A DNA stretch of 64,000 bases from Leucoraja erinacea (Eukaryota): assembly GCF_028641065.1 (NCBI RefSeq), contig NC_073387.1:15810001-15874000 (forward strand). Direction: 5' to 3'. Numbering within the stretch: the stretch's first letter is position 1; each line of letters begins with the position of its first letter. The translations under genes and the position numbers were made by a program. The notes beneath the pieces are model-generated. The model made no database searches. It was given only the letters and a program-made list of their open reading frames with translations, and was not told where the DNA came from. This document shows positions 4,731-57,771 of the stretch, piece after piece.

Positions 4731-6350
4731 TGACACAAAAAGCTGGAGTAACTCAACGGGACAGGCTGCATCTCTGGAGAGAAGGAATGAGTGACGTTTC
4801 GGGTTGACATCCTTCTTCAGACTGGTTAGGAATAAGGGAAATGAGAGATATAGACAGTGATGTGGAGAGATAAAGAACAATGAATGATAAATATACAAAA
4901 AAGTGATGATGATAAAGGAAACAGGCCATTGTAAGCTGTTTGTAGGGTGAAAATGAGAAGACAATGTGATTTGGGTGGGGGAGGGATGGAGAGCGAGGGA
5001 ATGAGGGGCTACCTGAAGTGAGAGAAATCAATATTCATGCCACTGGGCTGTAAGCTGCCCAAGTGAAATATGAGATGCTGTTCCTCCAATTTGCATTTAC
5101 CCTCACTCTAACAATAGAGGGGAACGAGAACGAGGAGAAAGGTCTGTGTAGGAATGGGTAGGACAATTGAAGTGTGCAGCAACCGGGAGGTCAGGTTGGT
5201 TCACGTGGGCTGAACAAAGGTGTTCCGTGAAACGATCGCCCAGTCTGCCTTTGGTCTCGCCAATGTAAAAGAGTCTACATCTTGAACAACAGATACAGTA
5301 GTTGAGGTTGGAGGAGGTGCAAGTAAACCTCTACCTCACCTGAATGACTGTCGGGGTCCCTGGACAGAGTCAAGGAAGGAGGTATAACGACTGGTGTTGC
5401 GTCTTCTGCGGTTGCAGGGTAAGTTATTTGGGGAGGGGGTGGTTTGGGTGGGAAGGGATGAGTTAACCAGGGAGTAGTGGAGGGAACGTTCTCTGCAGAA
5501 GGTGGAAAGTTGTGGAGCTGGGGAAATGTGGCTAGTGGTGGGATCCAGTTGTAGGTGGTGGAACTGTAGGAGGATTATGTGTTGTATACGATGGCTGATG
5601 GGGTGTAAGGTAAGGACTGGGGGGATTCTGTCTCTGTTGTCACTAGGAGGAGGGGGAGCAAGGGCGGAGGTGCCGGGTACCAAGAAGGCATGAGTGAAGG
5701 CCTCATGAATGATGGGAGAAGGGAACCTCCATTGCCTATAGAATGAGGCCATCTTGGATTATGTAGCATGAAATAACTCATCTTTGCGGCAGGTGCAGAC
5801 TAGATGGAGGAATTGTGAGTAGGAGATAGAGTCTTTGCAGGAAGCAGGGTGGGAAGAAGTGTAGTTGAGATAGTTGTGGGAGTCAGTGGGTTTGTAATTG
5901 ACGTCAGTTAATAGTCTATTTCTTCTGATGGAGGCTGTGATCTCAAGAAAGGGGAGGGAGGCTTCGGAGAAAATTTGAATACCACTGAAAATTGGCGATG
6001 ATGGTCCATGAGTTCTGCATGGGTGCAGGAGGTAGCACCGACGCAGTCACCAATGTAATGGAGATAGAGTTTGGGTATATGGCCAGTGTATGCCTGGAAC
6101 AGGGATTGTTCAACGTACCAAACAAAGATACAGGCATAGCTGTCAATATGGATGCCCATAGCTACGCCTGGAGCATGGAGGAAGTGGGATGAGTCAAAGG
6201 AGAAGTTGTTGAGGGTGAGGACCAGCTCCGCTAACACCATTATTGATTTCATCACTTCTGACTGTCTGCCTTCCACAACCTGCAACCCAATCGTTTCCCT
6301 GCACCGCATAGCCCGTTTTTACCTTCTCTCCAGGACCAGGCCAAGCTGGC
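4731..6350 (-). mobile_element. Penelope-like retroelement, 5'-truncated and decayed
   Basis: RT motifs LVLTLNNFSFD..GVAMG..YIGD and YKPTD; GIY-YIG nuclease CSRCRLFYIGETKGRLGDRFTEHL; terminus with CTGAAGA..GAAACGTC. Confidence 0.9.
4789..4823 (-). ncRNA. Putative minimal type I hammerhead ribozyme of the Penelope terminus
   Basis: AGT-CTGAAGA-AGGATGTCAACCC-GAAACGTC-ACT: catalytic boxes, stem I AGT/ACT and palindromic ACGT stem III. Confidence 0.6.
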
Positions 6351-6354
6351 CATC

Positions 6355-6645
6355 CGCAAGTCAAGAGTCAAGTCAAGAGAGTTTATTGTCATGTGTCCCA
6401 GATGGGACAATGAAATTCTTGCTTTGCTTCAGCACAATATAATAGGCATGAGTACAGAACATATCAGTGAGTCCATATACCATTATAGAAATAAATACAC
6501 GCATCAACAAATAAGCAGATAAAGTGCAAATAAACAGATAATGGTCTATTAACGTTCAGAGATTTGTTCCAGTTGAGTTTAATAGCGTGATGGCTATGGG
6601 GAAATAGCTATTCCTGAACCTGGACGTTGCAGTCTTCAGGCTCAA
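6355..6645 (-). mobile_element. Rex1/Babar-like LINE 3' fragment
   Basis: (CTTGA)n-type tail; a longer copy with RT C-terminal coding sequence lies at ~57275-57770. Confidence 0.55.
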
Positions 6646-6770
6646 AATGTGACCTTGCATGAATTCCACAACAAAACACTTCAGGTTTTACACAATAATG
6701 AGCTGGTCTGGCACCCCAGCGATTCCCCCGTGGGAATGGTGAATGTCTCCTGACCCTCTCACTAACCCTC

Positions 6771-7293
6771 ATAGATTCATAATTCTGTTAGTTCATAATT
6801 CTGTTATTTCTTGTTAAAGAATAAAATGTTTATAAACACACATACATGAATGTGATATAAATATATATAATCATATAACACACACAATTATAGTTCTTCT
6901 GATCCAATGATGAACTTTATTTCAGCCTAGACAAGGGACATTAAATAAGAAACATTGTAAACCTCCCCGCAACTTCACACACACTAGGCATTATCCCACC
7001 ACTCAACTCTCTCCCCCAACCCACCCTCCGGCACTCCCTCGCCTGCCCCCACATTATAATGTCTCCCCCCCCCTGTTATGCCCCTCTCCCCGCTGCCCCG
7101 GGCCGCACACCCCCTCTCCCCAGGCCGCACACCCCCTCTCCCTGCTGCGGAAACAAAGATCCGATCTTTGGCCGGAACAAGATGGCGGGGACTGGTCGCT
7201 AAAATGGGTCCTATAATCACCCATGAATCTGCCCATGAGCGTACTACACGTTTGCGTGAGAGTAACCCTTCTCGCTCTGCTCTAAAACCTTTG
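6771..7293. mobile_element. Right half of a TIR non-autonomous DNA transposon
   Basis: Matches 58820-59341, including the terminus ...CTCGCTCTGCTCTAAAACCTTTG; the left half is deleted in this copy. Confidence 0.8.
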
Positions 7294-8971
7294 CTCTGAA
7301 TCTCATTGATCTGTTTTTCACAGTTGAGGCAAGTCCACAGTGCCCTCTGCTGGGCAGTGACGTCACAGCTGCACCATCTCCTGACTCTCAGATACAGTCA
7401 GTCTTCAGTGGAGACCAATGGACTAATCACAGCAGAACACGAGCAACACAGATCAGATCCGTCTGAATAACACGGTCTATCTGATGACCCAACATGTTAC
7501 AGTGGAGGATGGGAAGCTGTATGTGTGTGAAGTGCGGGAGAAAGGAAAAGTCGTTCATACAAGTAATGCCAATTTTAATGTTATTTTGGGTATGTGTCAA
7601 TATCTCATATTAGATATTGAGTATACACTTGTACCATTGGTGCTTATTATAACATCCTGTGTTATAACAAGCACAGTCTGTGAAGAATTGTAGTTCATGG
7701 CAAAAATCTCTCTTGTACAAAATGCTTCAGTGTTCAAGGAGAAGCTTCAAGAAAGTCCCCCTGTGGAGCAGCTGCCTGTTCATCTCTGTTTGACAGATAC
7801 ACAATACTGAAAGAATGAATTTAATATGTTTAGTAAGAGTAACTCAGTGGGGCATTACTGGAGAAGATTAATAAGTGATGTTTTGGGTCAGAACTCTTCT
7901 TCAGGTTGAAGTGATTCCAGCTGCTCCGGACTCGGGCTTCTGATCAGCATTCTGCTGGTAGCCGGACCCAGGGAGAGGGAAGGGCTGGGAACCAATGGGT
8001 GCGAATGGGAGAGGGATGGTGGGAATTCTTTGAAGGGAAGGTTGGAATTGGATGCAAAGAGAGGAAGGAGGCAGCTGGTGGACAGAGAAATGTGACAGAG
8101 AGTGGGGTAGGGCTGATGTTTGCAGCATGCTGGTTCTGTATGAGGGTTAGTGAGAGGGTCAGGAGACGTTCACCATTCCCACGGGGGAATCACTGGGGTG
8201 CCAGACCAGCTCATTATTGTGTAAAACCTGAAGTGTTTTGTTGTGGAATTCATGCAAGGTCACATTTTGAAACATCAGATGAACAAAACAGAAATAATTT
8301 TAATAAAAATCTGGTTGGGAATTTTTACCTGATTACCCCTGTGCCTCAGTAACTGTGATGCTGAAAGGAGTTATATTCTTTTGTCTCGCTGCTATGGACA
8401 TTTTCAGCACATGTCACACACTTCACTGCTCCAGCATAGATCACAGTGAAGTCCAGCTGGTTTGCGATTGTCTTCCTGGTTCCGGACCTGGACATCTAGT
8501 CGCCTAAAAGACCAGCAGAAAGTAATAGCATCAGCAACACTCTCTCAACCCATCAATGTCACCAAGGCCGCTTTCAGGAATTGACTTTCAAACTAATTTG
8601 TAGCTTTCCACCTTTATACCTGCTCAGACTTAACATAATCGTTACATCAAGCTTTTAAATGCATTGCATTTCCTGCCATTACTTAAAAGTGAGAATCAGT
8701 CTTCTTCACACCGGTTCAACATCTGTATTCAGCTTCCATAGATATTGTGGGAAAACAATGAAGATGAATGATGCAACAACAAAAATGACCATTGCTGGGA
8801 TATTTGTTGTCCCTTCAGCTTGTATTTCAGAATTATAACAACTAGCAATAACGATTTTACTAAAAAATGAAATTTCATTTCTCACTCAGGTGTAGAAGTG
8901 AGGGAGAACTAAACTGTTGGAGGTTGTATCTATAAGATTATATAATCACTGATATGTTGCCCGCAATCTCT

Positions 8972-9270
8972 GAGCACGGTGGTGCAGTGGCAGAGTTGCT
9001 GCCTTACAGTGCCAGAGACCCAGGTTAGATCCTGACTACTGCTGCTGTCTGTACCTAATTTGTACATTCTCCACTTGACCGCTTGGGTTTTCTCTGAGAT
9101 ATTTGGTTTCCTTCCACACTCCAAAAATGTACAGATGTGTAGGATAATTGGCTTGGTATAAATGTGAATTGCCTCTAGAGTGTGTATATAAGTGTGCGCG
9201 GTTTGCTGGTTTGTTGGGTCTCAGTGTGCCGAGTGGCCTCTTTCTGTGCTGTATCTCTAAACTAAACTCA
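8972..9270 (+). mobile_element. HE1/V-SINE-type SINE, full length
   Basis: tRNA-like head (GGTGGTGCAGTGG...GGTTAGATCC), V-SINE core, and CR1-like tail GCTGTATCTCTAAACTAAACT. Confidence 0.8.
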
Positions 9271-9719
9271 CCTGCATTTCGTGGATCTACAGATATCAAT
9301 AGGTGAATTGTTGCCATTGTCCTGACCATTATTTATCCACAAATCAACAGTTATTAATCTGAATATTAGCACATTGTGAGAACATTCTCTGTGGAGATTG
9401 GTTGCTGAATTTCCATCATTCTTACCGGGGCTACTCCTGCCAGTGCCCATCATTTTGTCAGTGGACTTTCCACCAAGATGGTTGTGAGACTGGGGTTTAT
9501 CTTTTGATGTGAAGTGTAGAGAGGGAGGATATCATAGTGCCAGACATTACTGTACAGTTATTGTAAACTTTCTATATCAACTAAGGGATTGTCACCACAA
9601 TAAAAACAAATGTGATCACTTTTCCTTTATTTTGAATGTAGGGTGGCAGAGGTCTCATAGATCTTGGCAATTACAAAAGGACACACATATATACCAACAG
9701 ACAGAGGTTAGGGTCCCTT

Positions 9720-10130
9720 GATAGAACAGCTGGTGATGCGTAAATTATCTCTCAAGGAAGGGTGGGATCATGTTATCCTTGAAGGGGATAATCCATGAGT
9801 GAGGCAAATCATGGATGCAGGAGCCATGTTTAAATCACCACAGGGAACTGAAGTGGGTCAGTGGCTGATGAAAAGCAGAGGCACTGTGTTGAAGAAGAAA
9901 TGGCAAAGTGATGGAAACAGAGAGCTGAGCTACAGTAAAGAGCTTGGAGCTCTGGAGGCTGTGGGGATCCACTCGGAGAGGAATTTAATGAGAAATGAAA
10001 TTCAGAGAAAGGACTTGATTGCCTTGAGGGAATGAGGGAACCAACATGGAGTTAGCTGCATCATCTGGCTGAGGGAGAGTGTGGGAGGGAAAGGAAGAGC
10101 CGAGGAAGGGGAGAATGCAGGGAACTGGAT
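9720..10130 (-). mobile_element. Old L2-like LINE remnant
   Basis: Decayed purine-rich stretch typical of antisense L2; duplicated at ~61770-62175. Confidence 0.4.
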
Positions 10131-11167
10131 CATCAGTCTGAGACAACTTGAAATTAGGAAATTCAATACTTGTGCCTTTGGGTTGCTGGCTACTCTAGTA
10201 TAGCCAGGCGTTTAGAAGAATACCACCTTATATTCCACCACGGAAAGTTTACAACCATTGGTATGTACATGGAATATTCTAATTTGAGGAAACATACACC
10301 TTCTGTGTTGCACTCTCCCCCTCTTTCTGAACCACCTCTAATACTCACATTTTTGTTTCCTCTCCCATCTCCCCTCTCCAGCACCCTTTCTCCTCTCCCT
10401 CTGTCTCCCGGCTCCATCTCCTCTCCACCCACACACTTCACCACTGGATCCCCTCCCCCATCCGGTTCCATCTGCCCTTTATCTCTCCCTTAATGGTTCC
10501 CATCAGCACCATCATGACATCAGATTCCAGCACTTGTTGGCCCCGTCTTCTGTCAAGTACAGAAATGGTAATAGATTCTTAAACCTTGTTGTTGGGAATT
10601 ATGTCTGATCTGATCTTGACCAAGGAACAAACTCATTCATTAAATGTTCTAAAGTGATTTCCCTCACACCGTTGTCACCGTGAATCATGGATTTGTTCTA
10701 CAAGGTCTGTATCATTCAATTGAAGAAGAAACCTAACAATTCTCTAATATTACACTTTAATCATTTTGCTGTAACATGGAGCGTGCATTTCAGCACCACA
10801 AACAGCGGCTGGCTGCCGGTAAACACCGGCACTGTAGACTGAGCTCTGGCCACAGTCACATCAGCCACGACTTTGTTCAAATACCCAGAATTGGATCAAC
10901 TCATCTGGACCTCATCAGCTTCCTATTTATAAGTTAGTTCCAGCCAGAGAGGAGAGAGAAGGAGGAAGCAGGGCAGGAAGAAAGGGAGGGAAAGTGGAAA
11001 ACCCTCTATTAACTGCGCAACTTTTCACAGGCTAGAAAGAAGACTGAGACCGCCAGCACCTCCTGGTGAGGCCAGAGTGAGCTGCTGGGACAAATCCAAG
11101 ATAGCCGGTGTCCTCCCTGATGTCGAATGACTTTGGCCCCGTGTGGACCTGGACCTTCTTGTGACTT

Positions 11168-13005
11168 GTGTGGTGGGCAGTGACTAGCGGGGTGCCGCAA
11201 GGCTCGGTGCTGGGACCCCAGTTATTTACAATATATATTAACGATTTAGATGAGGGAATTAAATGTGACATCTCCAAGTTTCAAAAGTTCAAGAGACATT
11301 TATTGTCACATGCACCAATTGGTACCGTGAAATTTGGGTCACCATACAGCCATACGAATAAAAAAGAACACAACACACGATAGATTTTAACATAAACATC
11401 CCCACACAGCGGACTCAAAGTTTCCCACTGTGAGGGAAGGCACCAAAGTTCAATCATCTTCCTCTTTGTTCACCCACGGTCGGGGCCTTCCGAGCTTTCC
11501 GCAATCACCGTTACAGGTGGCCCGATATACAGGCCCTCTCACCGGGATGATGGAACTCCGACTTCGGAATGGAAGAACATTCTCAGCGGATTGGACTTCC
11601 GAATCGGCCACTTCCTACCAGAGACCGTGGCTCCCGAAGTCCACAGGCCGAGCTGGGCGGAGATTCACACTGACGGGCCTCGGCAAAGGGATCCCAGGAC
11701 TCAGCGGCTGGGAGCGCCACAAACCACAGCTCCGCGATGTTGATGCTGCAGGCCCAACACTCCGGAGCTTCAAACGGCGATACCAGGTAAGGCATCGCCC
11801 GCTTCACGATGAATCCAGTGCTGCACCACTGCTGAAGCTCTGGCTGGTCTCCGGCAGGATAGGCTGCGCCAATCCAGTTGGTAGGTTGCGAGGGGGGGAG
11901 GGGGGCGAAGATGCAACTCGGAGAATAGTCGCACCCTTGCCTGGAAGTGACTGAGAAACGCTTTCCCCCTTACCCTCCCCACCTCCCCCACATAAAAATA
12001 CTAAGAAACCTCCAAAACATACTTTTCAAACATTAAAAATAACAAAAATATGGAAAAACATCCAGACTGTAGGCAGAGGCTGCCATCATACGGTGCCCGA
12101 AGTTTGCGGATGACACAAAGCTGGGTGGCAGTGTGAGCTGCGATGAGGATTGTATGAGGCTGCAGGGTGACTTGGATAGTTGGGTGAGTGGGCAGATGCA
12201 TGGTAGTTGCAGTGTAATATGGATAAATGTGAGGTTATCTACTTTCGTGCCAAGAACAGGAAGGCAGATTATTGTCTGAATGGGAGCAGATTAGGAAAAG
12301 TAGAAGTGCAACGAGATCTGGGTGTGCTTGTACATCAGTCACTGAAAGTAAGCATGCAGGTACAGGAGGTAGTGAAGAAAGCTAATGGCATGTTGGCCTT
12401 CATTGCGAGAGGATTTGAGTTTAGGAGCAAGGAGGTCCTACTGCAGGTACAGGGCCCTGGTGAGACCGCATCTGGAATATTGTGTGCACTTTGTTCTCCT
12501 AATTTGAGGAAGGACATTATTGCTATTGAGGGAGTGTAACGTAGGTTCACCAGGTTAAATCCCGGGATGGCGGGACAGACATATGATGAAAGAATGGGCC
12601 CACTGGGCTTGCATTCACTTGAATTTAGAAGGATGAGAGGGCATATTATAGAAACATTTAATTTCTTAAAGGATTGGACAGGCTAAATGCAGGTAATATG
12701 TTCCCGATGTTGGGGGAGTCCAGAACCAGGGGTCACAGTTTAAGAATAAGGGGTAGGCCATTTAGGGCTGAGATAAGGAAAAAATCTTCACCCAGAGAGT
12801 TGTGAATCTGTTGGGGAAGCCAATTCACTGAATGTTTTCAAGAGTTAGATTTACCTCTTAGGGCTAAAGGAATCAAAGTATATGGGGGAAAAGCAGGAAC
12901 TGGGGTACTGATTTCAGATGATCAGTCATGATCATATTGAATAGTGGTCCTGGCTCGAAGGGCCGAATGGCCTACTCCTGTACCTATTTTTCTATGTTTC
13001 TATGT
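11168..13005 (+). mobile_element. CR1 (HER1-like) LINE 3' portion, interrupted at 11282-12099
   Basis: [24 protein letters not shown]...ISK|FADDTKLGG...RDLGVLV..KKANGMLAFI; (TTTCTATG)n tail near 12990. Confidence 0.92.
11282..12099 (-). mobile_element. ~820-bp non-autonomous retroelement nested in the CR1 RT
   Basis: Splits the SK-FADD codons; flanked by an AAGTTT duplication (11276-11281 and 12100-12105); 3' tail resembles the Rex1-type tail. Confidence 0.7.
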
Positions 13006-14980: not shown

Positions 14981-15982
14981 TCAAAGGGAGTTCTGCAGTT
15001 TCTATTGGTTATCACAGCAGGAATTTACCCTAAATTTGTTATGTTTCCAGCACAATTTTACTGCAGTCAGAGGGGCTGCAGTCAGTCTGTTACTGCAGTC
15101 AGGATGGGGTCTGCGCACAAGACAGACCTACGACAGTTAGGAGAGGCGATAATGTCACAGCACTCAGAAAGCATGAGTGGGTCATTCACCAGTAGATGTC
15201 AGCAGTTGGATCATTGAGGCAGGGACTGCAGTCAGGAAAGCGAGTTGGTTATTTGCTGAAGAAATGCTTCATTGGATCATTGATGGATTGAGCTCAGTAT
15301 GGTGGTGAGTGAATGCAGGGTTTAGCTGGTAGCAAGGACACGTCTGACAGTAATTATATTGCTGACTTTCCAATGCAGACTGTTTGCACTCTGCTGAAAA
15401 CAGTTCCCTGGGTTAGTGTGTGGAGACTGCCTTCTACCAGGGTTCCACTCTCACTGTGTGAACAGAATCAGGGGTGACCCCATGATCACCGAGCCCTGTT
15501 TCATACCTTCCCATTCGAACGGCTCTGCTTAATTCAACACTTAATCCAGCTGAGGTCACTCACTAGCAACGCACAGTCTCAAAATCCACATCCCATCAAG
15601 CTCCACACACAGTTGGGTCACCATCATTCCCTGCAGCTATAAAAATGTGTCAAAGTGTGGAACCTCACTGGACACAAGTGTAGGTCAGGAATTCACCCCA
15701 AAGTCAGCATGAGTTGCCCTCATACACATTTCACACTGACCTGAGGAGATGGTCTTTGTGAATTGAAATAACCAGCACCGAGACTGTTGACATGTTCACT
15801 GTGGGATAGAAACGACACCAGCAACATATCAAACAAGCACAAAGTAAATGCCCAATAAACCCACATATCTATTTAGAAAGTCTCCGTTCGGCTCAATATT
15901 TTTGTAGAAACACAGATTTCCTTGGGCATGAGCCTGATGGGCTGAATGGTCTCTTCTGCGCTGGGTCATTCATTCTGATCTC

Positions 15983-16066
15983 TCAAGATTTCAAGGTCTG
16001 CAATGCGACAGCTTCGTTTGAATTGTTTGTGACATTTCCTGTAACTTCCCGTGGATTTCTGCAGCT
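15983..16066 (-). CDS. Terminal cytoplasmic exon SCRNPREVTGNVTNNSNEAVALQTLKS*
   Basis: T-rich acceptor tttgttgttcttgtttgatacag; open in phase 0 for 27 codons. Confidence 0.6.
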   Translation of the reverse strand, partial: SCRNPREVTGNVTNNSNEAVALQTLKS

Positions 16067-19000
16067 CTGTATCAAACAAGAACAACAAATATTCTTTAAA
16101 ATAAAGAGTTTATCCTGCAATGATAAACAATAGACTGGAAGTGATAGGTAAGAGGCAGTTTGGAGACAAAGTTGGAAATATTTACATGGCTATTTCATGG
16201 TAAAAAGAATACTCATTAGGAGTACTAGGAGTTCTGGTAGCCCCATTAAAGGAAGGATATGAAGGCTTTGGAGAAGATGCAGAAGAGGTTTACCAGAATG
16301 CTGCCTGGATTTGATTGGAAAGTAAAATCAACAGTTACGAAGGGTTGTGGTAGAAACAGCTCTGAGAGTGTCATTTAAGAGGTTTTTAGATAGGCATATT
16401 AATATGCAGGGAATGGAGAGATTTGGATCACGAGTGGGCAAAATAAATTAGTTTAAATTAGCATCATGATCAGCTTAGACATTATGGGCCAAAAGGGCTT
16501 ATTTCTGTGCTGCACTGTTCTATGCAAAACACTAAAATACAGATTGTCACCACTCTAATATGTTCTGTGAACATTCATTTTCTCAACGTCAGAGACAACC
16601 TGTCATTGGTTTCTGATATATTGAAAAGCTCATGAAATTCTCACCCTGTTCATTCTCCATGAGTAGGAAATTAGTCCAAGTGCAACGGCCAGTTTAATCA
16701 ACAAATATCGCAGAACTGTGATGATCCTAATGTCTTGAAGTGCTCTCACTGTGAAGGACAAAGTTGATATTTTCATTTTTTTTCTCAACCGTGTTTCATA
16801 ATTAAATACTACTGTCTGTGATGTGACATCAAAAACATTCTGAATTAGATACTGGGACACAGTGAGAAATAATATGTCAAGAGTGAGAAATATTTGTGCC
16901 ACGTCTAAGTCCAGGGTACCTTTTATTTCGCGTCCATAACATCTGAGTACTAATGTTTGATATTTTCTGCCTCATTACTTTTGGAACATTGTGAATATTT
17001 TTTGGGAGAATGAGATGTGTCTGAACATACACAAAATAGGTTGATCCATTATCTAAACTGATGTCAACCAGGTGTCCACCAAGGCATCTACGCAAGAGGG
17101 ACTGGATAGAGATTCACGGCTGAGACTCTGCAGGATCTGAATTCTCACTCAGGCCGTATTGCCTGAGGACCTCATACAATCAGAGAGTCATAGAGTGATG
17201 CAGCGTGGAAACAAACCTTTTGGCCCAACTTACAAGTCCCAGTTAGCCTAATCCCACCTCCCCAAGCTTGGTCCATGTCCCTACAAACCTGTCCTATCCA
17301 TTACCCAGTGAGGTGTGAGAGGCACGACTCATTCACTTGGGTTTATTTAAATAAATGTTCATTTTACAAAGGTGCAATCTTGCTTTAATTTTACCCTCAT
17401 GTATGGGTTTGAAAGATCTGTGTTTCCATAACATGTATATACAAAATGCTTTATATTTTATTTTGATTTATTCACTGATATAATATTATGCCATCAATTG
17501 ACAGGCTCCAGTGAAATTACACTTTGATCTGTAGCATTGGGTATAGATGGAAATATGGGAGATTTAAAATCAGAAATTGTTTTATTTAGGATTATACAGG
17601 GAAAAATATAATTATTACTCCAGTAGTAGTTGAAGGTTGTTATTGGTCCTTGTGAAATCTGAGGTTAGAATTTTGTCAAGGTACAACTATAGTACCGGAT
17701 CTGAGATTAGTCAGATGTGAAGCCTATTGGAGAAATGATCACTGAAATCATCAAACCTGGAATTGTCCACATTGGAAAAGATTAGATTCACGTAGAGATT
17801 GTACCCAAGAGAACAATAAACATAAATCTAATCACCTTACAACTTAAATTATTGTGTATACTTACCCTTTAAAAATAGTTAATTCTGTGATTATTCTAAA
17901 TTGTTCAATTGACATACAACATATGCATGTAGTTATGGTTAAGAACTGATTTATCTTTAACATTTTAAAGATAATTAATGTGCACGTAATATACATGTGT
18001 GATATTTTTTACACATTGTTGTAGCAGCCACTGCTGTCAGTTGACTGTAGCAATTTTCATTGAAGTCTGTTGTTCAGCACCTCTCTCTTTATTCCTTGCT
18101 TGAGTGAACAGCAATAGAAGAAAGACCATAGACACTATACGAATGATTAGGGGGTGACCTCTAGTAAAAATATCAATCTGTGGCAAGGATTTTCCATGGA
18201 GGATCAATGCTGAGTTATTGAAAGTGAGGCAATTATGCGAAAGAGAGAGCAGCAACTGAGCGAAACATGTTGTGATGTGACACAAGCTGAGGAACTTACC
18301 GTTCACCTTAAGATAGATTGAATTTCTCAGCTTGAGGCTGTTTCGCTGAAACAATCCACATGTCCATTTCCTTCTCACTGTCTCAGCTTTTGGAATAATC
18401 AGCTGCAAAGACCACACTTTCTCTCTTGACTTGTTCAAAAATATCTCTCCCATACTTTTGCCATCACTGTTGATCCAAGAGAGTCTCATTGATTCAGCAA
18501 CACCAGACACAGAGCAGGTCAGTGTTACATTGTTTTCCTCTGTTAATGCATCAGATGGTTCGACTGTGGCTATGAAACAAGACCATCATTAAAATTTTGA
18601 ACAGCAGCCAGGGTTTTTACTCTATTGATTTCTTTATCAATCGCCTCATAACCCTATGACTGGCCAAACGGACAATTTGTATTGTTTAGAAACAGTTTTA
18701 TTGTATGCTGCAGTGAACAGCAATAGAAAAATAACCACAGACACGACACAAATGATGAAGGGGTGATCTCCAGTAAAAAGTTCAATCTGTGGGAAGGGTT
18801 TTCCATGGAAGGTCAATACTGAGTCATTGAAGCTGAATGGCAACACCTAATAATATGATTGTTTACATTTATATTGTGGAACTTGATTTTCCATGATCAA
18901 AGAAACCAACTAAAAAACACTGCACAATAAGCAACTGCTGCCCGCAGCACTGCCTCAGTCCACTGTGCTGGAGCCAAACCCTTCCACACACTGACACATT

Positions 19001-22000
19001 CCAATGGCAGGATGCCATCGAGGATCTCCTGTGAATGACACATGATACAGAGGATCCGGAATATACCCTCATTTGACCTGCATTGAGGTTTATTTATTTC
19101 TTCGATGGACCCATTTCCAGTGGGTGAATCAATTCCACATCATCGACCTTAAATATGAAAAGGAAAATGCTGTAATGCCATGTGCTGCCTGATATACTGT
19201 TTCATGATTCATTTTGTGTTGAGTAAAACACAAATAAATATCTGTAATTCTGGAATAAAACCTACTCTTTAAAAGAAGGGAATATTTGGAGAAATTTGCA
19301 CAGAAATTGCAGCTCGCATTCAATGTCGGAGTTCTACTACAATGAATGAAAAATACTAGCAGCATTCAGTCTCCTACCTGTAACAGTGATTAGGTCAATG
19401 GTCACATATATATTTGATCCCGTGGAACATGTGTAAACTCCAGCATCTTCAAATTGTATGGGGACAATCCTCACATGGAAATTCTTGCCATTCACATTTC
19501 CCTCTGCGGTTTCCAGTCGATTCCCAAAGTAGCTCCTGTCAACATGGATCGGCTCAGACCTGTGAGAAGAAGTTATTTCCTTCTCTTGATTCTGGAAATG
19601 TTGTGATCTCCAAGTCCATTTAGTTTCACTGAGATCAGGAGAAGCTTCACAAATCAGGTCGAGTTCACTGTGATCTGTAACTGAGCGATAAACTGTGTAC
19701 GTCTTGTTATGTAAACCTGCAAGAGAGGGACAGGGAACAAAGAATTGGATTTCCACAGATGCCGAGATACAATGTTGTGAGTTTCCACAGAGCCAAACCC
19801 CCAGCTCTGGGATGTCAGCTGGGATGGCCGCACTGGGACAGGGAAGTCGGCTAGGAGCTGGAATACGTCACCTGCTGGTCCAGGTGCCCTTTGTTCAAAT
19901 GCCGAGCTGTAAAGTCCATCTTCCCCACACACACACCCAGCAAAGTGATGCTGGTGGACTGGAGATAAATTCTGCCACAATAGCTCAACACTCAATTATC
20001 ACTCATGTAGCAGCTCCATTTCACTGGGACTGTCAAGTGTTATTGGGCAGTTAATTATTTAGAGTATTTTATTGACCAGTGGAACTCAACATGCCTCAGC
20101 CAATCTTGCACCTGTAGTTTAGTTAGTTCATATTTCTCAGCTCCATTCCAGATAGAATACCACTTGCTTCTCTCCATTGATTGATGTTATCCCCTTTGAC
20201 TCATGCAGGTGAACTGAAATGAATCCCTTGGTTCTCCTGTGTGGCTCCATCAATCTTAGTGCCACCATTTTATATTTACAACATGTCCCAGGGTAAAGGC
20301 TATGTCCACATAGTGCAGTGTGGAAGCCCATGGGTGGAGTCAGTGCTCACTGTACAATATGTGGAACAGTTTGATATCAGGAACTATTAATACCTGCTGC
20401 AAGGCAGCTTTGGACTCACCCTGATCCACTTCAACATTGGTGTCTCCAGTGAGAACAATGGAGCCATTTTCCAGCACTTCCCATGTGTACAGATTGGGAC
20501 TTCCTGCTCCAACGTGTTGGACCATCAGATATACGGTGTTAATCAGATGGATCTGATCAGTGTTGTTCCTCGTGTTCTGCTGAGATGGGCCTCTTGGTTT
20601 CCAGTGAAGACTGACGGTATCTGGAAGTCTGGAGATGGTACAGCTGAGGGTGATGTCACTGCCCATTACTGGCCTCGGTGAGTCTGCCTCAACTGTGGAA
20701 TCAGACACATGACATGTGGATCAGTTCCCCACCAATTTTATGAATAACTGTGGGCAGAATTGTCTCTTTCCTGCAAACAGTTGGCCATACTCAGTGATGT
20801 CATCAACACTTCCTGGTAGTGACCATCTGTCCCTCTCGGCCCCCTCGCCTCCCACATCAACACTTACAGGTAGGGATTTATTTAGTACAGGAGAAACATA
20901 GAACTGCAAATGCTGGTTAATATATAAAAGGACAAAAAGTGCAGGAGTAATTCAGCGGGTCATGCAGCAACTCTAGAGAACATAGAAAGGCGATGTTTCA
21001 GGTCGAGACCCTTCTTCAGACTGATTATTTTTCTTCGATGTCTTTTACTGAGGGGTGATCATATTGGGGTGAATCATGAGAGGCATATCGTTAGTAAATG
21101 CACATGGCCTTTTTCCCAGTGTTGGGGAATCAAAAACTAGATAGTACATGTTTAAGTTGAGAGGGGACAGATGTGATATATCCCATAATGTGAGGTGCAA
21201 TTTTTTGACAAAGAGGGTGGTACTTGAACAAACTTTATGGAAAGATCGAGCAGAGGAAATGGTTGATGCAGGTGCAACAACAATTAAAAGACATTTAAAC
21301 ATGCACATGGAAAAAAGGTTGAAGGGATAAGGGCCAAATGATGGCAAATTGGATGGTTAGATGTTCAGTTGGTCCATTTGGATGAATTGGGCTAAAGGAC
21401 CTGTTTCAGTTGTGTGTGACACTATAACTTACCTTTGATCCCAAATAGTTCCCACTGTCTCAGGATTTTCCCACCGGGCTCTGCTCGAGTCCAGGTGAAT
21501 AGTCCTGCAAGTTCAAAGATGGGCTTCCTGATCCTCAGATCAAGGGTACCCCAGTCCACACGCATGCTCTGGGAAATGCCTGGTATTTGATTGTACTCAT
21601 CACTCCATTGTACGGCCCACTGCTGATCTTCTCTGTGAAAAGTGGCCAATCGCTTTGTGGTTTGTTGCCCTGAGTGTGGCCTCCATTCCCAGTCAATGGG
21701 GCCATTTCCAGGACTGTCTGGTCCTTTCATTACAAAGTTGCCTTCCTGGTGGAAAAAGTAAATAGAATCTCCACATCCTGTAGGAAAAGAGAAGAATCTT
21801 TAATAAGTTTTACATTATAATTCATCATCCTGGAAGAGCATAGAAATAGGTCCTCTTTATCAACCCACCAACGCTGACCAGTGGGTATCCTTCCACGCAG
21901 ACACTAGAAACTGCAGATTATGGAATGTTGATCAAACGCAAAGTGCTGGAGAAAATCAATGGGTTAGGCAGCATCTGTGGAGGGAATGGATTGATGATGT

Positions 22001-25000
22001 TTTGTATCTGGACACTTTTTCAGACTGATGGTCTAGTTGAGAAAAAACTGGGGAAAGGGAAGTAGGCATGAGACAAAGCATGGCAAGTGATAGGTGGATA
22101 CAGGTGGGGAATGGTGATTAGATGGATGGAGATAATGACAAAAGCAAGCGGTGAAATGGAGACCGTAGTTTGTCAGATCCGTAAAAGAGGGAGGGATATG
22201 GGTGGAAGTGGAGCAAGAACATATAAGCAGAATTGTGCAATTGGAAGGGGTGGGAAATGAGTGGAAAGAGGAAGGGAAGGGAATAGTGTAGCTGGGTGGT
22301 GGGATAAATGCATGCACAATGAAGTGGGGGGGGGAGAAAATGGGGTTTGGGATGTTTTATTTGAAATTTGAGAATGAATTGGTCATAATAGACTACTCAC
22401 AAACCAGAAGAACATATTCCACTTTCAAATTTCAGGACATCAAAACTCAATCATGACTAAGTATGAAGAGCAAACCCTGAGTCACTTACCACGGGGCTCC
22501 TGATAGTACGGGACAAAAAGCCGGGGCAGGTCTTGATGAAACAAACCACATCTCCAGTTCCCTCTGCCTCTCTCATCTTTCTGAATAACCAGATTCTGTG
22601 ATTTCTCTTCCACAGTCAGTGACATTTCTCCAACACTTTTGCCATCGCCATTGATCCAAACCAGTCTCATTGACTCAGTAACGTGAGACACAGAGCAGGT
22701 CAGTGTAACGGTGTCTCCCTCAGTCACTGCATCAGACGTTTCTGCTGTGACTGTGGAAACAAGCAGGTTGTTTAGATTTTAAACATTGAGTTCATCAGTA
22801 AAAACACTGGTAGCATAATATCTCCTACCTTTCACGGTGATTAGATCAATTGTCAGATATGGATATGTTCCTATTGAACATGTGTAAGGTCCGGCATCTT
22901 GAAACAAAATCGGGACAATCCTCAAACTGAAATCCTTGCCATTGAAGTGTTTCACTGAGGTCATCAGTCGATTCCGGAAGTAGGTCCGGTTGACATTGAT
23001 GGGCTGAGAGCCTACGGCAGTTGCTATTACTTTTTGTTGTTGTTGAAGGCGACGAGATGTCCAGGTCCACCGAGCAGTGGAATAGATATAACTAGGAGAA
23101 CAAACCAGGTGAAGTTCACTGTGATCTGTGTTGGAGCGGTAAAGCGTGCATCTCTCCTTATATAAAACTGTATCAGTGAGACAAAAGATAACTCCTTTCA
23201 GTATTCCAGTTACCGTGCCATAGATAGATTCTTATCCGCGTTTCAAATGTAACATATTTCTTGAATGCCGCACCAAAACACATCAGATCTTCATAAAATA
23301 AAATGTTGTGTTCAGCAGTAAGTTGTAGTTAAGTTTGAATATTCCACTACATTTCAACATTAGGTTCGCCCCCACTCCCGACTGTCCGGGAATCTCCCGG
23401 GATGGAATGAAACCTCCCGGAGAATCCTGAGAGCGTCCCGGGATGTGAATCTCTTTGTCTGTCTGCAGGAGGTAGTGCAGGTTCAGGCTGCGGACAGAAG
23501 CAGCCCAGAGGATGCCTGATCCGGACAGGTTGGCAGTTCAAGTGGGTCAGGTCTTCCCGTCCTACCCTGTTCCTGGGTCCTGCTCTCAGCTCAATGCTGA
23601 TCTGAAGCCAGAGTATGCAGCAGCTGGAATCACTTCAAACAGCAGCAGGACTCGGAGAGAAGGGTCAGTGAGGTGAGAGGGGACGGATTTTATTCAATGC
23701 TGATGTGTGTACCGGGACCCCAAGTGTGAGTGTGAGCAGCAAGTGCTGGTGGTTGTCATGGTGACTACACTTTCTATCTGACACTTTGACGTGAGTCCTG
23801 TATCAGTATCTCAGTCTCAGATACTGGAGCATTGATGGCAAGTTAAACTGACAAAATACTTTACTAAACAATTGTTACAGAAATACATCATCACTCCTGT
23901 GTTGTGTGTCTGTCACACAGAGACAAGCAGGCAGCTGCTCCACAGAGAGACTTTCTGGAAACTTCTCCCTGATCATTCAGCATTTTATACAGGAGAGCAG
24001 TTGGTCACTGTCCACAGTTCTTCACAGGGCGCACGCATAATATTACAAGATGCACCGTGATACAAGTGTCTACTTGATATGTAATGGGAGGTGTTTACAC
24101 TTACACGTGTTTACAGTAAAATCTCCATTACTGGTGAGAACGATGTTTCCGTTTTCCTTCACTTCACACACATACAACTTCCCATCCTCCACTGTAACAT
24201 GTCGGATCATCAGATAGACCGTGTTATTCAGGCGGATCTGATCAGTGTTGCTCCTGTTCTGCTGGGATGAGTCCATTGGTCTCCAGTGAAGACTGACTGT
24301 ATCTGAGAGTCTGGAGATGGTGCAGCTGAGTGTGACGTCACCACCCAGCAGAGGGCGCTGTGGACTTGCCTCAACTGTGAAAAACAGATGAATGAGATTC
24401 AGAGTGAGTAGTGGTGTGGACAGTCCAATGACTGGGCTCAAGGCTGACAGCCTGGCTGAAAGTCAGGACAACTTCTCCCCCAGTGCGTTCAGCCCCCTGA
24501 CACGCATGGCTGGTCACAGTGACGCAGCTGTTCACCGTGGGGCAGCTGGTGGAACCGGCAACATTCAGGCTTTGTTGCATTTACACATGCTCTGTTTCAA
24601 ATATTCACAAACTGTTGAAAATGCATCTATTTCCACCCCTCTTATGTTTATCTGATTGTTCTCAAGAGGTGAACACCTTGATGGCAGAGCCCAAGTCCCA
24701 CAGATGATGGACTTTCATCGGCCTGGTCACAGGGTAACATTAAGCAGCAGTGTCACCCCGGAGCCACTGCACGGAGACATTGGTTTCATACCACCTTGCC
24801 GCGATCACCTTAGCGTCTGCCGGCGAGAAGACCATGGCATTCGCTGCGGGGTGGATTCATTGATTTGCTGTTCCCAGTGAAGTCAAACTAATTTCACCAC
24901 TGCTGATCATTTTAGAATCAATGAACAAAATCATTTCCCCAGTTGTTTTACTGGGAGATTCTCTTTTCACCGGGTGGATGATGTCTCACGTCCCACCATC

Positions 25001-26305
25001 TCTCATCATTATAGGTGACAATATAAATTAAACATTATTGATCCTTATCGCACCCACTCACCTTTGATCCCAAATATTTCATATTGTTTCAGGATTTGTT
25101 TTCTCGGTTCTGTTTGAGCCAAAGTGAAAAATCCTGCCAGTTTAAATGTGGGATTATAAATTGTCAGATCAAGTGTACCGTGATTTACATACATCTCCGG
25201 GTACAAGTCCACTTTACTCCAATAGTTCCCTTTTCTTCTAAAAGTCGCCAAATTCTCGACTTCCTTCCCTGAGTGTGGTTTCCATTCCCAGACAACAACA
25301 GAGTCTTTCTCGGGATTGTCCGGTCCGTTTAACACAATGTCGGCTCCGTTATCCAAGAAATACATTCGATGTCTGTATTCTGTTGCAAATACGAACAATG
25401 AAGAATTAACATTTAAAACACATTTCCCCCACTCCATATCTGTAATTATTAATTTTGAACAATTCAATTCCAGACAGTTGTGATCTTTCTTGGAAACCCA
25501 GCGAGGAAGACTCAGTTTGTGAAGAGATGTCTGTCTGTAGAACTCTGAAGTCTGAAGAAGGGTTTCGGCCGGAAACGCTGCCTGTTTCCTTCGCTCCATA
25601 GATGCTGTTGCACCCGCTGAGTTTCTCCAGCATTTTTGTGTACCATCTGTCTGGAATAACCTGGCCTGATCCAGGGATATTTCATCACATGAGAGGAGTG
25701 AGTGGGAGGGGATCGGAGGTGGGGATAGGGATTTGTGGTGGGGCAGTGGAGGAGCTCCCCCCGGTTTTGAAGGAACTTTGCGGGAGCGTGGTGAAGTGTG
25801 TTGCGCGTGGTTCTCGGGCTGCGACTGGATCGATAAGTTGAGGGCAGTTCCACCAGCCTGCACTGTGGTGGGAAGGTGTTGGGGCAGGATGATGTGAACA
25901 ACTGTGTCAAAGGCTGCAGAGGCTGAGCGGTATGAGTAGGGAGAGTTTAACTCCGTAACAAGCTCACAGGAGGCCATTTCTGACTTTGATAAGGACCGTG
26001 TCGGTGCAGGAGGAGAGAGAGTTGAGGGAGGAGGGAAGGGGGGGGGGCTGAGAAATGGAGCTCCAGTAAGGAATGGCGTGGATTTGTGAGGCATCAGCAT
26101 ATTCAGGGACGTGGAGAATAAAGCGACATTGACAATGGGGTGCCGGTTTACACGAACAATGATAACGTAATGCAACGTTATTGTGACCGGTGAAGAGAAA
26201 GCACTTACTCTGAGTTGAAACAGGTCGAAGCAGGAAAACAAAGAAACCGAACATCAAACCAATTGGCAAACTGCCGCAGAGAAACCTCGGCCTCATTTTG
26301 TGCAT
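15983..26305 (-). CDS. Eight-Ig-domain type I membrane receptor, 899 aa, 11 coding exons: 26305-26209, 25379-25062, 24374-24105, 23167-22829, 22750-22490, 21777-21433, 20692-20420, 19716-19378, 18569-18300, 16748-16645, 16066-15983
   Basis: All introns are GT-AG. The leader ends in phase 1, the eight Ig exons are phase 1-1 and open, the TM exon is phase 1-0, and the tail exon ends in TGA. Lengths 97+318+270+339+261+345+273+339+270+104+84 = 2700 nt. Confidence 0.85.
16130..16530 (+). mobile_element. CR1 3' remnant in the TM-tail intron
   Basis: Decayed ALEKMQKRFTRMLPG motif and CR1 3' tail. Confidence 0.65.
16645..16748 (-). CDS. Transmembrane exon VRALQDIRIITVLRYLLIKLAVALGLISYSWRMNR
   Basis: Acceptor tttgtccttcacag and donor AGG|gtgaga; phase 1-0 as typical of TM exons; hydrophobic stretch with embedded R and K. 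Confidence 0.8.
18300..18569 (-). CDS. Ig D8, C2 domain with WxC (paralog of D4)
   Basis: ATVEPSDALTEENNVTLTCSVSG..LSWINSDG..RRKWTCGL; donor G|gtaagt. Confidence 0.92.
19378..19716 (-). CDS. Ig D7, V domain (paralog of D3)
   Basis: ..DHSELDLIC..TKWTW..NFHVRIVPIQFEDAGVYTC..; same 339-nt length as D3. Confidence 0.92.
20420..20692 (-). CDS. Ig D6, C2-like domain (paralog of D2; F-strand Cys replaced by Trp)
   Basis: VEADSPRPVMGSDITLSCTISRLPDTVSLHW..PNLYTWEV. Confidence 0.9.
21050..21425 (+). mobile_element. CR1 3' remnant in intron D5-D6, preceded by a Penelope-derived terminus (~20895-21025)
   Basis: CR1 3' UTR-like sequence; CTGAAGAAGGGTCTCGACCTGAAAC on the minus strand. Confidence 0.65.
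21433..21777 (-). CDS. Ig D5, V-like domain lacking the canonical disulfide (paralog of D1)
   Basis: GCGDSIYFFHQEGNFVMKGPD..DWEWRPHSG..LDLRIRKPIFELAGLFTW..ELFGIK. Confidence 0.9.
21900..22380 (-). mobile_element. Decayed Penelope-like 3' terminal region
   Basis: Similar to 4731-5040. Confidence 0.55.
22490..22750 (-). CDS. Ig D4, C2 domain with WxC F-strand
   Basis: VTEGDTVTLTCSVS..LVWINGDG..RGNWRCGL; preceded by a 78-nt intron. Confidence 0.92.
22829..23167 (-). CDS. Ig D3, V domain
   Basis: ..DHSELHLVC..ARWTW..NRL..DFSLRIVPILFQDAGPYTC..; DxGxYxC motif. Confidence 0.92.
24105..24374 (-). CDS. Ig D2, C2-like domain
   Basis: VEASPQRPLLGGDVTLSCTISRLSDTVSLHW..EDGKLYVCEV..; canonical C-W-C. 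Confidence 0.92.
25062..25379 (-). CDS. Ig D1, cysteine-free V-like domain
   Basis: KYRHRMYFLDNGADIVLNGPD..VVWEWKPHSG..LDLTIYNPTFKLAGFFTL..YEIFGIK; acceptor gcaacag, donor G|gtgagt. Confidence 0.9.
25662..26130 (-). mobile_element. L2-like LINE remnant in intron 1 (copy at 40725-41175)
   Basis: Frameshifted TDTVLIKVRNGLL and SAAFDTVVHIIL RT motifs. Confidence 0.6.
26209..26305 (-). CDS. Exon 1: signal peptide MHKMRPRFLCGSLPIGLMFGFFVFLLRPVSTQ
   Basis: Basic N-region and hydrophobic core; donor CAGA|GTAAGT; conserved in four paralogous copies. Confidence 0.9.
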
Positions 26306-26673
26306 TCTCTGTTTGGAAATAACGTGCAGTTTTAGACTTTGATCAGTAAATTGCTAGTTGCCAAATGTTTTATTGAGTACAGCCAGTTTGAAACTCCTGA
26401 CCCAGGAGCACTTTAGAATTGGTCGCACACAATTACACGGGGAAAATACATTCGCTTGGTGGACGCTGCCGCTGGAATATTGTCACTTCTGTAATCTGGG
26501 ATTTCTCGTCCATATTAAACCGCTATCGATTGGCATTGTCCGAAATCACTCATCTGAACTCCGCCTTTTTAATTTTTGACACAATTACTTCCCACTACTC
26601 GGTAAAATAGTTTCAACTAAATTGGACCTCGCTATTGAGTCAATGAACAGAGAAGGCAACAGAATGGCAAGGG

Positions 26674-26760
26674 ACACAAAATTGCTGGAGAAACTCAGCG
26701 GGTGCAGCAGCATCTATGAGATGCTGCTGCACCCGCTGAGTTTCTCCAGCAATTTTGTGT
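26674..26760. repeat. Perfect inverted repeat (42-bp arms, 3-nt loop) from Penelope termini
   Basis: 26674-26715 is the exact reverse complement of 26719-26760. Confidence 0.95.
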
Positions 26761-28224
26761 ACCTTCGATCTTCCAGCATCTGCAGTTCCTTCTTGAACAG
26801 AATGTCAAGGGACATTGAATATTCTCAGACGGTCCCAAGACGTTGTCGGAGGTACGGGAAAAAATATTCAATTTAGATTGACTAGGAAACCAGTAGGAAA
26901 ATGGCATATGCTGGTCATTTAGCTGTGAGAAACACCCTCCATTCAGTTACTGGGGAACTAAAGGAGACAAAGCGAAATTAATAAAGTTTGTATGCCCTAG
27001 TAAAATCTAAAGTAGAACAAACTGATTGAACGAGTGATAGATCACAGTTTACAGGATATCCAACATTGTTCAGTTTCTGGATACCACTCTTTTACATGAA
27101 GTGAGACTGCAGTGAGGTCGCCTACTTTGTGAGAAGAGACTGATGGTGAACGAGTACAGAGACTGCGGTAAAGCTCCAAGCACGGCGACACACTGAGATT
27201 CACAGTCTCACTCGATGATTTACACAGTTTCTTTGGAAGGGCAAACACCCTTCAGCTATTTATCACCAGACTACTCCCAAGTAAACCAAATCATACTTAA
27301 GAATGTTTGTTCGTCGTGTGATCTTGAACGGAACAGGGGTACTAATAATTTGCAGAGGAAAAGCTGCAGTAAGTTGCTAGTTCGCAATTGTTGTATTGAG
27401 TACAGCCACTTTGAAAACTCTGGGCCCGGACCATTTGAGAATTAACCGCACACAATTACACGGGGAAGGACCATTCCTCTGTGGAATCTGCCACTGGAAT
27501 ATTGTCACTGCTGTAATCTGGGATTTCCACAACCACATTCAATCGGTTCGCTTTGACTGAAACGACTCATCTGTACGCAGACATTTTAATTTTTGACCCA
27601 CTTCCTTCTTCTCGGTAGAGTGGTTTTAACTCATTTGTACCTCACTAGTCAGTCATTTAATTGAGCGGGCAACAGAACAACGAGGACGTTGAACATCCTC
27701 AAACAGTCCCAGAGCCCGAAGATTTCCGGATAAATGGGAAAAATAAAATCCACATTGGCATGGATACATTATATTGACCCGGTAACAAATAAGAAAGCAC
27801 AAATGGGTAAAATGGCAGGTGCTGGTAATTTTGCTTCATTACGTTTCTAGGGGGAAACAATGGAGACAAAAATGCATTGATAAAGAATGGGTGATGTTTC
27901 GGATCTAAGAGGTCAGCGTATGAAACGTCACCCATTCTTTCTCTCCAGAGATGCTGCCTGTCCCGCTGAGTTACTCCAGCATTTTGTGTCTCTATTCATT
28001 ATTAAATAAGTTTCTATGTCCTTGTAAAATCTAAAGCAGAACAGACTGTAACAGTCTAATAAATGGTTGTAGGAGTAGAATATCACACATTAGAAATGAC
28101 GTTAGATCCCATTTAAACCACTCCTTTACCTGAAGTGAAACTGTAGTAAAGTAGCCTACCTTGTGGGAAGAGACTGGTGAACGAGGCCAGAGACTGGGCA
28201 GCAAAGCTCCAAGCACGGCGACAC

Positions 28225-28350
28225 ACTGAATTCCCCAGTCTCACTTTGCGCAATAACTAACGCTGTGTCTTATGAAAGTACAGGACCTTCCTCTTCCTCT
28301 CCTTCTCAGGGTTCAGACATCACTTCTGTTGAAAGTGTTTGCGTCACTGT
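28225..28350 (-). promoter_or_regulatory. Putative promoter: C/EBP palindrome, tandem PU.1/ETS boxes, kB-like site
   Basis: TTGCGCAA at 28246-28253; AGAGGAAGAGGAAG at 28287-28300 (minus); GGGGAATTCA. The C/EBP and PU-box motifs recur at ~43459-43515. Lies just 5' of a donor-bearing exon-like block. Confidence 0.4.
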
Positions 28351-28554
28351 AAAATCCACCTTGTTTTAAACCTAATTTCGGCAAAGTAAAATGGGAATTT
28401 ACTGAGCTCAAACATGAGCCATGAGGCATGGAACCTCATTTTTCTAAAGGTTATTGGAGGTTAACAAATGTCAACGGCAATGGGAAATGAGATAATCTGT
28501 TGTTTTGTAATGATGATTATATGTCAATCTTCTTGCATCTGTAGCGATGTTCTG

Positions 28555-28860
28555 ATTGAGTTTGGTTTTGAGATACAACATGGAAACAGGCCCTTCAACC
28601 CTCCGTCCACCGACCATTGATCTCCCGTTCAGGCTAGTTCTGTTATCTCACTTTCCGGTCCACTCCCTACGCACTCCAGGCAATTTATGGAGGTCAAGTA
28701 ACCTGCAACCCGCTCATTTGTGGGATGTGGTACTAGGAAACCAGAGCACCTGAAGGAAATCCACGTGGCCACAGGGATCGTGCTATCTCCACCCAGAGAG
28801 CACCAGAGGTCAGGATTGAACCCTAGTCTCAGGCAGCTCTAACATCTGTGCCACTGTGAT
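28555..28860 (-). mobile_element. HE1/V-SINE-type SINE
   Basis: Homologous to the other SINE copies. Confidence 0.78.
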
Positions 28861-29248
28861 TTGGATGGTTTGGCAATTTCAAACTATGAGTTTTGGGTTG
28901 GGGAGAACACAAACGAGCAGATATGATAATTGCTGTATTATTCAGTTATTCCAATGTTGAGTGTAATTATCACCTGAGTTTCACACAAGGTAAACCCGCC
29001 AGTCACCATTCTCATGATCATTCAATTTCTTCTGCAACTTTCAGTGTTCTCCAAACCAAACCGTACAGTTTGCACCAAGACCGTCATAACCTCTAAGAAT
29101 AAATCGTGTCCCTTCCAGTTCAATTCAGTTTAATTCAGTGTCAAGTTTCTGACGTAAAGAGAAAAGCTTTTGCTGAATGCTAACCAGCCTGGGCAAAGGC
29201 AAGTGTCATTAATGCCATTCACAACTGAAGTTAGAATTGTTTCTTGTA

Positions 29249-57270: not shown

Positions 57271-57274
57271 ATCC

Positions 57275-57770: not shown

Positions 57771-57771
57771 G

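Follow-up and report, generated by a model that had tools for sequence, protein, structure and literature searches.

In this study, we analysed a stretch of 64,000 nucleotides from the little skate Leucoraja erinacea (contig NC_073387.1, positions 15,810,001 to 15,874,000; hereafter the window, counted from its first letter) and found that its minus strand at 16748-16645 encodes the transmembrane (TM) helix of LOC129701495, a receptor with immunoglobulin (Ig)-type domains. This exon, the tenth of the gene, is probably the TM helix of an activating-type paired receptor of the Ig superfamily, which docks one acidic dimer via a lysine (Lys). A sequence-only reading of the same exon had taken an arginine (Arg) and the Lys, spaced R-x4-K, for the signature of the T-cell receptor (TCR) alpha and delta chains. 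Judging from the relatives' helices, the R-x4-K pair is the product of one substitution beside a conserved Lys. That interpretation is partly supported: the exon encodes an activating-type helix on a CD4-like germline receptor, and R-x4-K is a private substitution.

Isoform X1 of the gene product (XP_055498694.1, P0159; 899 aa) aligns at 100% to 11 GT/AG exons in the window, eight of them Ig exons; the receptor is germline-encoded, as had been proposed. The eight Ig-type exons lie 5' of the TM exon on the same strand, and their acceptors and donors are all in phase 1. On the plus strand, 16645-16748 is broken by stops in all frames and has no coding reading. On the minus strand it translates to ..VRALQDIRIITVLRYLLIKLAVALGLISYSWRMNR, which includes exactly the peptide that had been read there, the helix IITVL-R-YLLI-K-LAVALGLISYSW. 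The exon and the tail exon that follows it have these features:

16645-16748, minus strand: exon 10, a short stalk, the TM helix IITVLRYLLIKLAVALGLISYSW and the stop-transfer sequence RMNR (splice signals, mapping of P0159, homologous TM in 30 relatives).
16708-16710, minus strand: CGA codon for Arg, residue 851 of P0159 (26 of 30 relatives, and the ortholog, have Gly here).
16693-16695, minus strand: AAA codon for the family-invariant TM Lys (alignment of the relatives).
15983-16066, minus strand: exon 11, the last 27 tail residues SCRNPREVTGNVTNNSNEAVALQTLKS and the stop (mapping of P0159; homologous tails in P0148, P0152, P0158 and P0042).
15966-15986, minus strand: out-of-frame remnant LRDQNE-stop of the ancestral tail end (comparison with the ortholog tail).

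The TM exon is 104 nt long, occurs as a single copy within the window, and has the acceptor ccttcacag/TG in phase 1 and the donor AGG/gtgaga in phase 0; the acceptor of exon 11 is ttgatacag/AGC. The phase-1 donor of the last Ig exon, D8 (18300), joins the TM exon in frame and P0159 maps exactly, so that the helix does follow D8 as had been proposed. Because of its splice signals, its in-frame joins and the 100% mapping of P0159, the TM exon is well beyond a chance open reading frame (ORF). Between DIR and RMNR, the hydrophobic span counts 23 residues; Arg is the sixth and Lys the eleventh of these, a spacing inside the helix of exactly R-x4-K (i, i+5). The mean Kyte-Doolittle hydropathy of the helix is 1.66, compared with 1.84 in the ortholog with Gly. 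The tail, RMNR plus the 27 residues of 16066-15983, has 31 residues and no Tyr, in agreement with the tyrosine-free tail of about 31 aa that had been predicted.

What separates the two basic residues is their conservation. For the comparison, the ortholog from Amblyraja radiata (P0158; 95.4% identity over 603 residues) provided the TM region, which was run against all 159 collected proteins, with no residue required and E-values up to 0.02. Helices of this type were found in 30 relatives, 29 by similarity and P0075 by motif scan, from 16 species comprising skates, stingrays, mantas, a sawfish, sawsharks, and cat, carpet, horn and cow sharks. Lys stands in the same column in all 30, within the pattern G-Y-L-x-x-K-L...G-L-I. 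The Arg column holds Gly in 26 relatives, including the ortholog (IITVL-G-YLLIK), Val in two, Ala in one and Leu in one. Thus, the Lys of the pair is conserved throughout whereas the Arg position is basic in none of the 30 relatives, and R-x4-K does not stand as a signature of the receptor family. The D8 domain is common to P0158 and the Leucoraja gene, the next-best D8 match among the other collected proteins being at 62% identity. Gly is also present in the nearest skate paralogs and in a Rhinoraja relative, and Arg is therefore the derived state in Leucoraja. On this alignment it is a recent, private Gly-to-Arg replacement in the Leucoraja gene copy.

Basic residues were also found elsewhere in such helices. 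The stingray protein P0126 (Hemitrygon), of the Lys type, has an additional Arg eight residues before the Lys, which indicates that stray arginines occur in the outer half of the helix. Three eight-domain Mobula proteins (P0002, P0078 and P0087) have an Arg within the TM (VVALRLIIIL) together with tails that resemble immunoreceptor tyrosine-based inhibitory motifs (ITIM). The stingray and Mobula cases together suggest that basic residues have been gained and lost in these helices.

The receptor belongs to a family with two TM and tail types. The family was collected by a search of 1.84 billion proteins with the D7 exon and by a whole-protein search. TM-plus-tail searches of a set of 5.8 billion proteins returned only P0074 itself for the P0074 region and no match for the P0158 region. 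At an ectodomain E-value below 1e-20, 123 of the collected proteins matched, and 84 of the models have a TM. Among these 84, an uncharged helix with ITIM-like tail motifs such as ..IHYASV.. and ..VIYAQI.. is found in 39, an uncharged helix without such motifs in 10, and a Lys or Arg in the helix with no ITIM in 32; the remaining three, from mantas, combine Arg in the helix with an ITIM-like tail. Two TM and tail types thus stand on closely related ectodomains, the activating form having a basic TM residue and a short motif-free tail. Such a split between uncharged, ITIM-like and basic, short-tailed forms is classically seen in receptor families that pair inhibitory with activating members. The tails of the 30 relatives have 8-44 residues; 27 are without Tyr and three, from rays, have one Tyr. 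The family is common to sharks, rays, skates and a chimaera. Its genes are clustered and duplicated: in the little skate, a single chromosome (60.4-Mb record) carries LOC129701489 to LOC129701498 at least, and the window holds exon remnants and duplications at 94-97% identity. The gene model of LOC129701495 is already in public annotation and the family is without functional description; annotation calls its members "uncharacterized" or, in loose naming, "CD276 homolog" or "VCAM1-like", and our literature search found nothing relevant describing the receptor family.

The exons 5' of the TM exon were searched singly, with the public proteins P0159, P0158 and P0074 as spliced references. They are as follows:

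26209-26305, minus strand: exon 1, start codon and 32-aa signal peptide (MHKMRPRF..VSTQ) with a phase-1 donor (mapping of P0159, ORF list).
25062-25379, minus strand: exon 2, D1, a cysteine-less V-like domain (mapping of P0159; no Pfam match; V-like in the P0074 fold model).
24105-24374, minus strand: exon 3, D2, an Ig domain with LSC..YVC (Pfam Ig_3, V-set and ig; mapping of P0159).
22829-23167, minus strand: exon 4, D3, a V-set Ig domain (Pfam; mapping of P0159).
22490-22750, minus strand: exon 5, D4, an Ig domain with the W-x-C motif WRC (Pfam; mapping of P0159).
21433-21777, minus strand: exon 6, D5, a second V-like domain without the canonical cysteine pair, at 43% identity to D1 (mapping of P0159).
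20420-20692, minus strand: exon 7, D6, an Ig domain with YTW replacing YxC (Pfam; mapping of P0159; RNA joint to exon 8).
19378-19716, minus strand: exon 8, D7, a V-set Ig domain (Pfam; mapping of P0159; RNA joints on both sides).
18300-18569, minus strand: exon 9, D8, the membrane-proximal Ig domain with the W-x-C motif WTC (Pfam; mapping of P0159; RNA joint from exon 8).

Pfam matches of the Ig or V-set type were obtained for D2, D3, D4, D6, D7 and D8, and a Pfam search of the cysteine-less D1 and D5 gave no match. NCBI isoform X2 (P0083, 749 aa) runs through the D7 donor at 19378 and stops two residues on; it would be a soluble seven-domain form lacking D8, TM and tail.

The ectodomain resembles CD4 in fold. 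A family profile searched against the PDB had LAG-3 (3e-11) and CD4 (3e-9) among its best matches, next to CEA; phmmer searches of the PDB with D1 or D4 alone gave nothing or generic Ig matches only. An AlphaFold model was made of the four-domain member P0074, which is about 60% identical to the window protein (predicted local distance difference test 81, predicted template modelling score 0.74). In this model, long strands at 132-147 and 337-352 span the D1-D2 and D3-D4 borders. Foldseek placed the four-domain CD4 and LAG-3 structures at the top (5e-17 to 4e-15; CD4 5e-17, LAG-3 8e-17), and VIA-align gave Z 18.3 against whole CD4 and Z 16.1 against D3-D4 of rat CD4, with a root-mean-square deviation of 2.4 A over 170 of 177 residues. 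The earlier description of the ectodomain as CD4-like is thereby borne out as a statement on the modelled fold of a family member. In the CD4/LAG-3 family, strand F of each C2 domain typically carries W-x-C (PMC10768021); this motif is found in D4 (WRC) and D8 (WTC), but D2 has YVC and D6 has YTW. The tail RMNRSCRNPREVTGNVTNNSNEAVALQTLKS has neither the CD4 motif Cx(C/H) nor the LAG-3 motif (F/Y)xxL(D/E). The modelled likeness supports a CD4-like ectodomain at the level of fold, and the receptor may or may not belong to the CD4/LAG-3 family. SLAM/CD2 (cysteine-less V domain; weak Pfam 2B4 match, E 0.009), CD276, which is the NCBI name of some short members, and MDIR were also considered; the four-domain fold fits CD4/LAG-3 better than any of them.

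Spliced RNA was sought in one contig set and three runs of little skate (tissue unstated), aligned over 15001-20800 with a threshold of three reads per joint. Joints were seen between exons 7 and 8 (20418/20420 to 19714/19716) and between exons 8 and 9 (19378 to 18569; three runs), with ends CT..AC on the plus strand, which is GT..AG on the gene strand. The RNA depth over exons 10 and 11 is below 1x in most runs, and that over the intron just upstream of exon 10 is about zero. RNA therefore confirms the two joints before the TM exon, not the joint from exon 9 to exon 10. The intronic stretches 16165-16552 and 17135-17328 have RNA depth far above the exons and many loose read ends, and resemble fragments of a dispersed repeat whose transcripts come from other loci. 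RNA and assembly differ at 16041 (plus strand G>T, Thr to Lys in the tail exon; five of six reads in run X10 and one of two in X3) and at 15950 (T>C in four of four reads of X10). These differences could come from another allele or from reads of a close paralog.

The invariant mid-membrane Lys would be the functional feature of the helix. From this central Lys and the short motif-free tail we infer that the receptor most likely binds a single dimeric signalling adaptor, by the pair of acidic residues in that dimer. It is known that one basic TM residue pairs with two acidic ones in a signalling dimer, that in type I partners of DAP12 a Lys is located near the middle of the TM (position 9 in KIR) and that FcR-gamma partners have an Arg in the helix's N-terminal part; the Asp pair of FcR gamma lies at TM position 6 and the Asp of DAP12 at position 9 (PMC1440944). 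From residue type and depth, a DAP12-like adaptor would be the best guess and is a candidate only. Sister genes with an uncharged helix and an ITIM-like tail would send the opposing signal. The ectodomain may be seen as CD4/LAG-3-like V-C2-V-C2 units, doubled to eight domains in the Leucoraja gene. The new Arg lies on a conserved face of small residues (G6, A13 and G17), and its effect is most likely neutral or mildly harmful.

Several points weigh against the activating, single-dimer receptor proposed here. A literature search on shark DAP12 found nothing relevant, and the FcR gamma chain was not found in cartilaginous fish in a 2014 screen (PMC4016189). For assembly, a single basic residue at the right place may be enough even if the helix is arbitrary in all else, the remainder of the helix counting for little (PMC1440944), and so the new Arg is not necessarily inert; at position 6 it could in principle make a second site. 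No RNA joint between exons 9 and 10 or between exons 10 and 11 reached three reads at the low depth there, and the case that the TM exon is spliced in is made by splice signals, by homologs and by an NCBI model derived from the same assembly.

The same ease of assembly speaks for the model of the sequence-only reading, in which, as in TCR alpha, Arg and Lys would bind one acidic dimer each, of different kinds; the one receptor would then carry two modules with immunoreceptor tyrosine-based activation motifs (ITAM), a function newly gained in the Leucoraja gene. Arg and Lys, at positions 6 and 11 of 23, have the claimed spacing, the Asp pair of FcR gamma and the Asp of DAP12 sit at the positions given above (6 and 9), and in other respects the gene is intact, with at least part of it transcribed. 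However, the Arg is missing in the ortholog and in all 30 relatives, and it displaces a near-invariant Gly that shares a face of the helix with A13 and G17. The tail end of this copy is frameshifted. The TM exon is without detectable similarity to TCR helices in the PDB: phmmer of its 34 aa against all PDB chains, TCR included, gave no match at E-values up to 10, which is a weak test with so short a query. In addition, one of the adaptors in question, FcR gamma, is the chain reported missing in cartilaginous fish. We consider this model unlikely.

The frameshift in the tail suggests another way to understand the Arg. Lys-type members from cow sharks to skates share the tail motif ..TGNET..EAVALQTLNSD(P/T)DL.., and the relatives' tails end ..EAVALQTLNSD(P/T)DL..; the motif is carried by P0007, P0090, P0091, P0092, P0094, P0096, P0148, P0152 and P0158, and, with its end lost, by the window at 16066-15966. 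In stingrays and mantas, Arg-rich tails (..QGCNRRGQARGHRRRG..) take the place of the TGNET-type motif. The ortholog P0158 ends ..ALQALKSDPGLRDQNE, including ..KSDPGLRDQNE. The Leucoraja frame stops at ..ALQTLKS, with LRDQNE-stop directly after it in another frame, and therefore a deletion that is not a multiple of three has cut off the conserved end. The gene copy might thus be drifting to loss of function, Arg and frameshift both reflecting relaxed constraint in a cluster of fast turnover. Such drift would accord with the change of two strongly conserved features in the last two exons, with the ending of isoform X2 after D7, and with the broken D1-, D2- and D3-like remnants of the family in the window and its recent segmental duplications. 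Against it, none of the eight Ig exons is interrupted and their splice sites are intact, identity to the ortholog is 95.4%, spliced RNA is present, and most of the conserved tail stretch is retained. We regard drift to loss of function as improbable.

A further proposal is that the Gly-to-Arg change is adaptive, giving a second intramembrane docking site by which one germline chain carries two signalling dimers as TCR alpha does. If this were true, the Arg would be a recent and independent origin of TCR-type assembly logic; we think it very unlikely. Finally, CGA might be a rare allele or stem from an error of the assembly, the usual little skate residue being Gly, which is highly improbable: CGA is seen only in the assembly and the gene model derived from it, and the RNA alignments have no row at 16710, but nothing there looks like an error, the flanks being clean and the change a single base in a well-behaved exon.

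The rest of the window consists of family fragments and transposons, LOC129701495 being its only gene. A direct segmental duplication at 94-97% identity occupies 1850-10554 and 52933-62603, about 51 kb apart. Each duplicate carries, on the plus strand, D1-like remnants split over frames (3879-4221; 54868-55210), D2-like remnants (7367-7582; 59371-59630) and partial D3-like remnants (8415-8587; 60458-60630), which are probably pseudogene pieces of the same family in the opposite orientation. A second leader exon at 41354-41258 on the minus strand encodes an identical 32-aa signal peptide with the same donor, and P0159 maps equally well from either leader exon. It sits in a block, 40721-45294, that is 87-93% identical to the upstream region of the gene at 25659-31829, and may serve as an alternative first exon or be left over from a gene copy that was lost. 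A long terminal repeat (LTR) retrotransposon on the minus strand has inserted at 32622-40533, in the interval that separates the two leader exons; its gag, protease, reverse transcriptase/RNase H and integrase ORFs are largely open (33871-39520), and its LTRs of about 900 bp are 96% identical (32622-33522; 39630-40533). ORFs or fragments of reverse transcriptases of the long interspersed element (LINE) type were found at 46825-48042 (plus), 48581-50464 (minus), 29734-30660 (plus) and 11168-12539 (plus), the one at 48581-50464 being long and open (627 aa).

A TCR-like two-adaptor helix on a germline receptor would be striking; it fails the conservation test, the sequence-only reading having itself listed a lack of R/K conservation among the results that would refute it. 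The Lys, rather than the Arg, is the residue of functional interest, and to know this avoids bench effort on the wrong residue. Cartilaginous fish carry a large paired-receptor family on a CD4/LAG-3-like scaffold, with an invariant TM Lys and a conserved activating tail. Paired receptors of the natural killer (NK) type are poorly known in cartilaginous fish, and this family is therefore a reasonable candidate for that role.

Among known systems, the TCR alpha and delta chains resemble the skate helix in having Arg and Lys four residues apart, in the outer half and at the centre. In the TCR chains, however, the two basic residues are both conserved, each serving a defined module that requires it, whereas in the skate receptor the Lys alone is conserved and there is no C-domain or connecting-peptide context. 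Pre-T-alpha has the same Arg/Lys TM pattern as TCR alpha and delta. The ectodomain shares with CD4 and LAG-3 the four-domain V-C2-V-C2 order, the border-crossing strands, the best structural matches and W-x-C in D4 and D8, and as in LAG-3 the remainder of the tail after the TM lies in one exon (PMC10768021). CD4 and LAG-3 are one gene each, whereas the skate family is multigene with eight-domain and longer models; it also differs from them in the D2 and D6 domains without W-x-C, in the charged TM residue and in having no CD4 or LAG-3 tail motif. The MDIR of the clearnose skate are likewise a multigene family of Ig receptors with activating and inhibitory forms, and their domains are of the CD300/TREM/pIgR type with extra cysteines; by this description they differ from the present receptor, in which D1 and D5 are without a cysteine pair and the fold match is to CD4. 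In organization, the skate receptor resembles KIR2DS/KIR3DS, SIRP-beta and TREM, which act with DAP12. All are type I receptors that have a Lys in mid-membrane and a short tail devoid of signalling motifs; their genes are clustered and duplicated, and sister genes combine an almost identical ectodomain with an uncharged helix and an ITIM-like tail. Functionally similar families are the NITR and LITR of bony fish and the CHIR of chicken. KIR and LILR are built of C2-type domains and NITR of a V domain, whereas the skate ectodomain is a CD4/LAG-3-like V-C2-V-C2 rod of eight domains, and the Leucoraja copy differs from activating receptors of the KIR type in its extra Arg.

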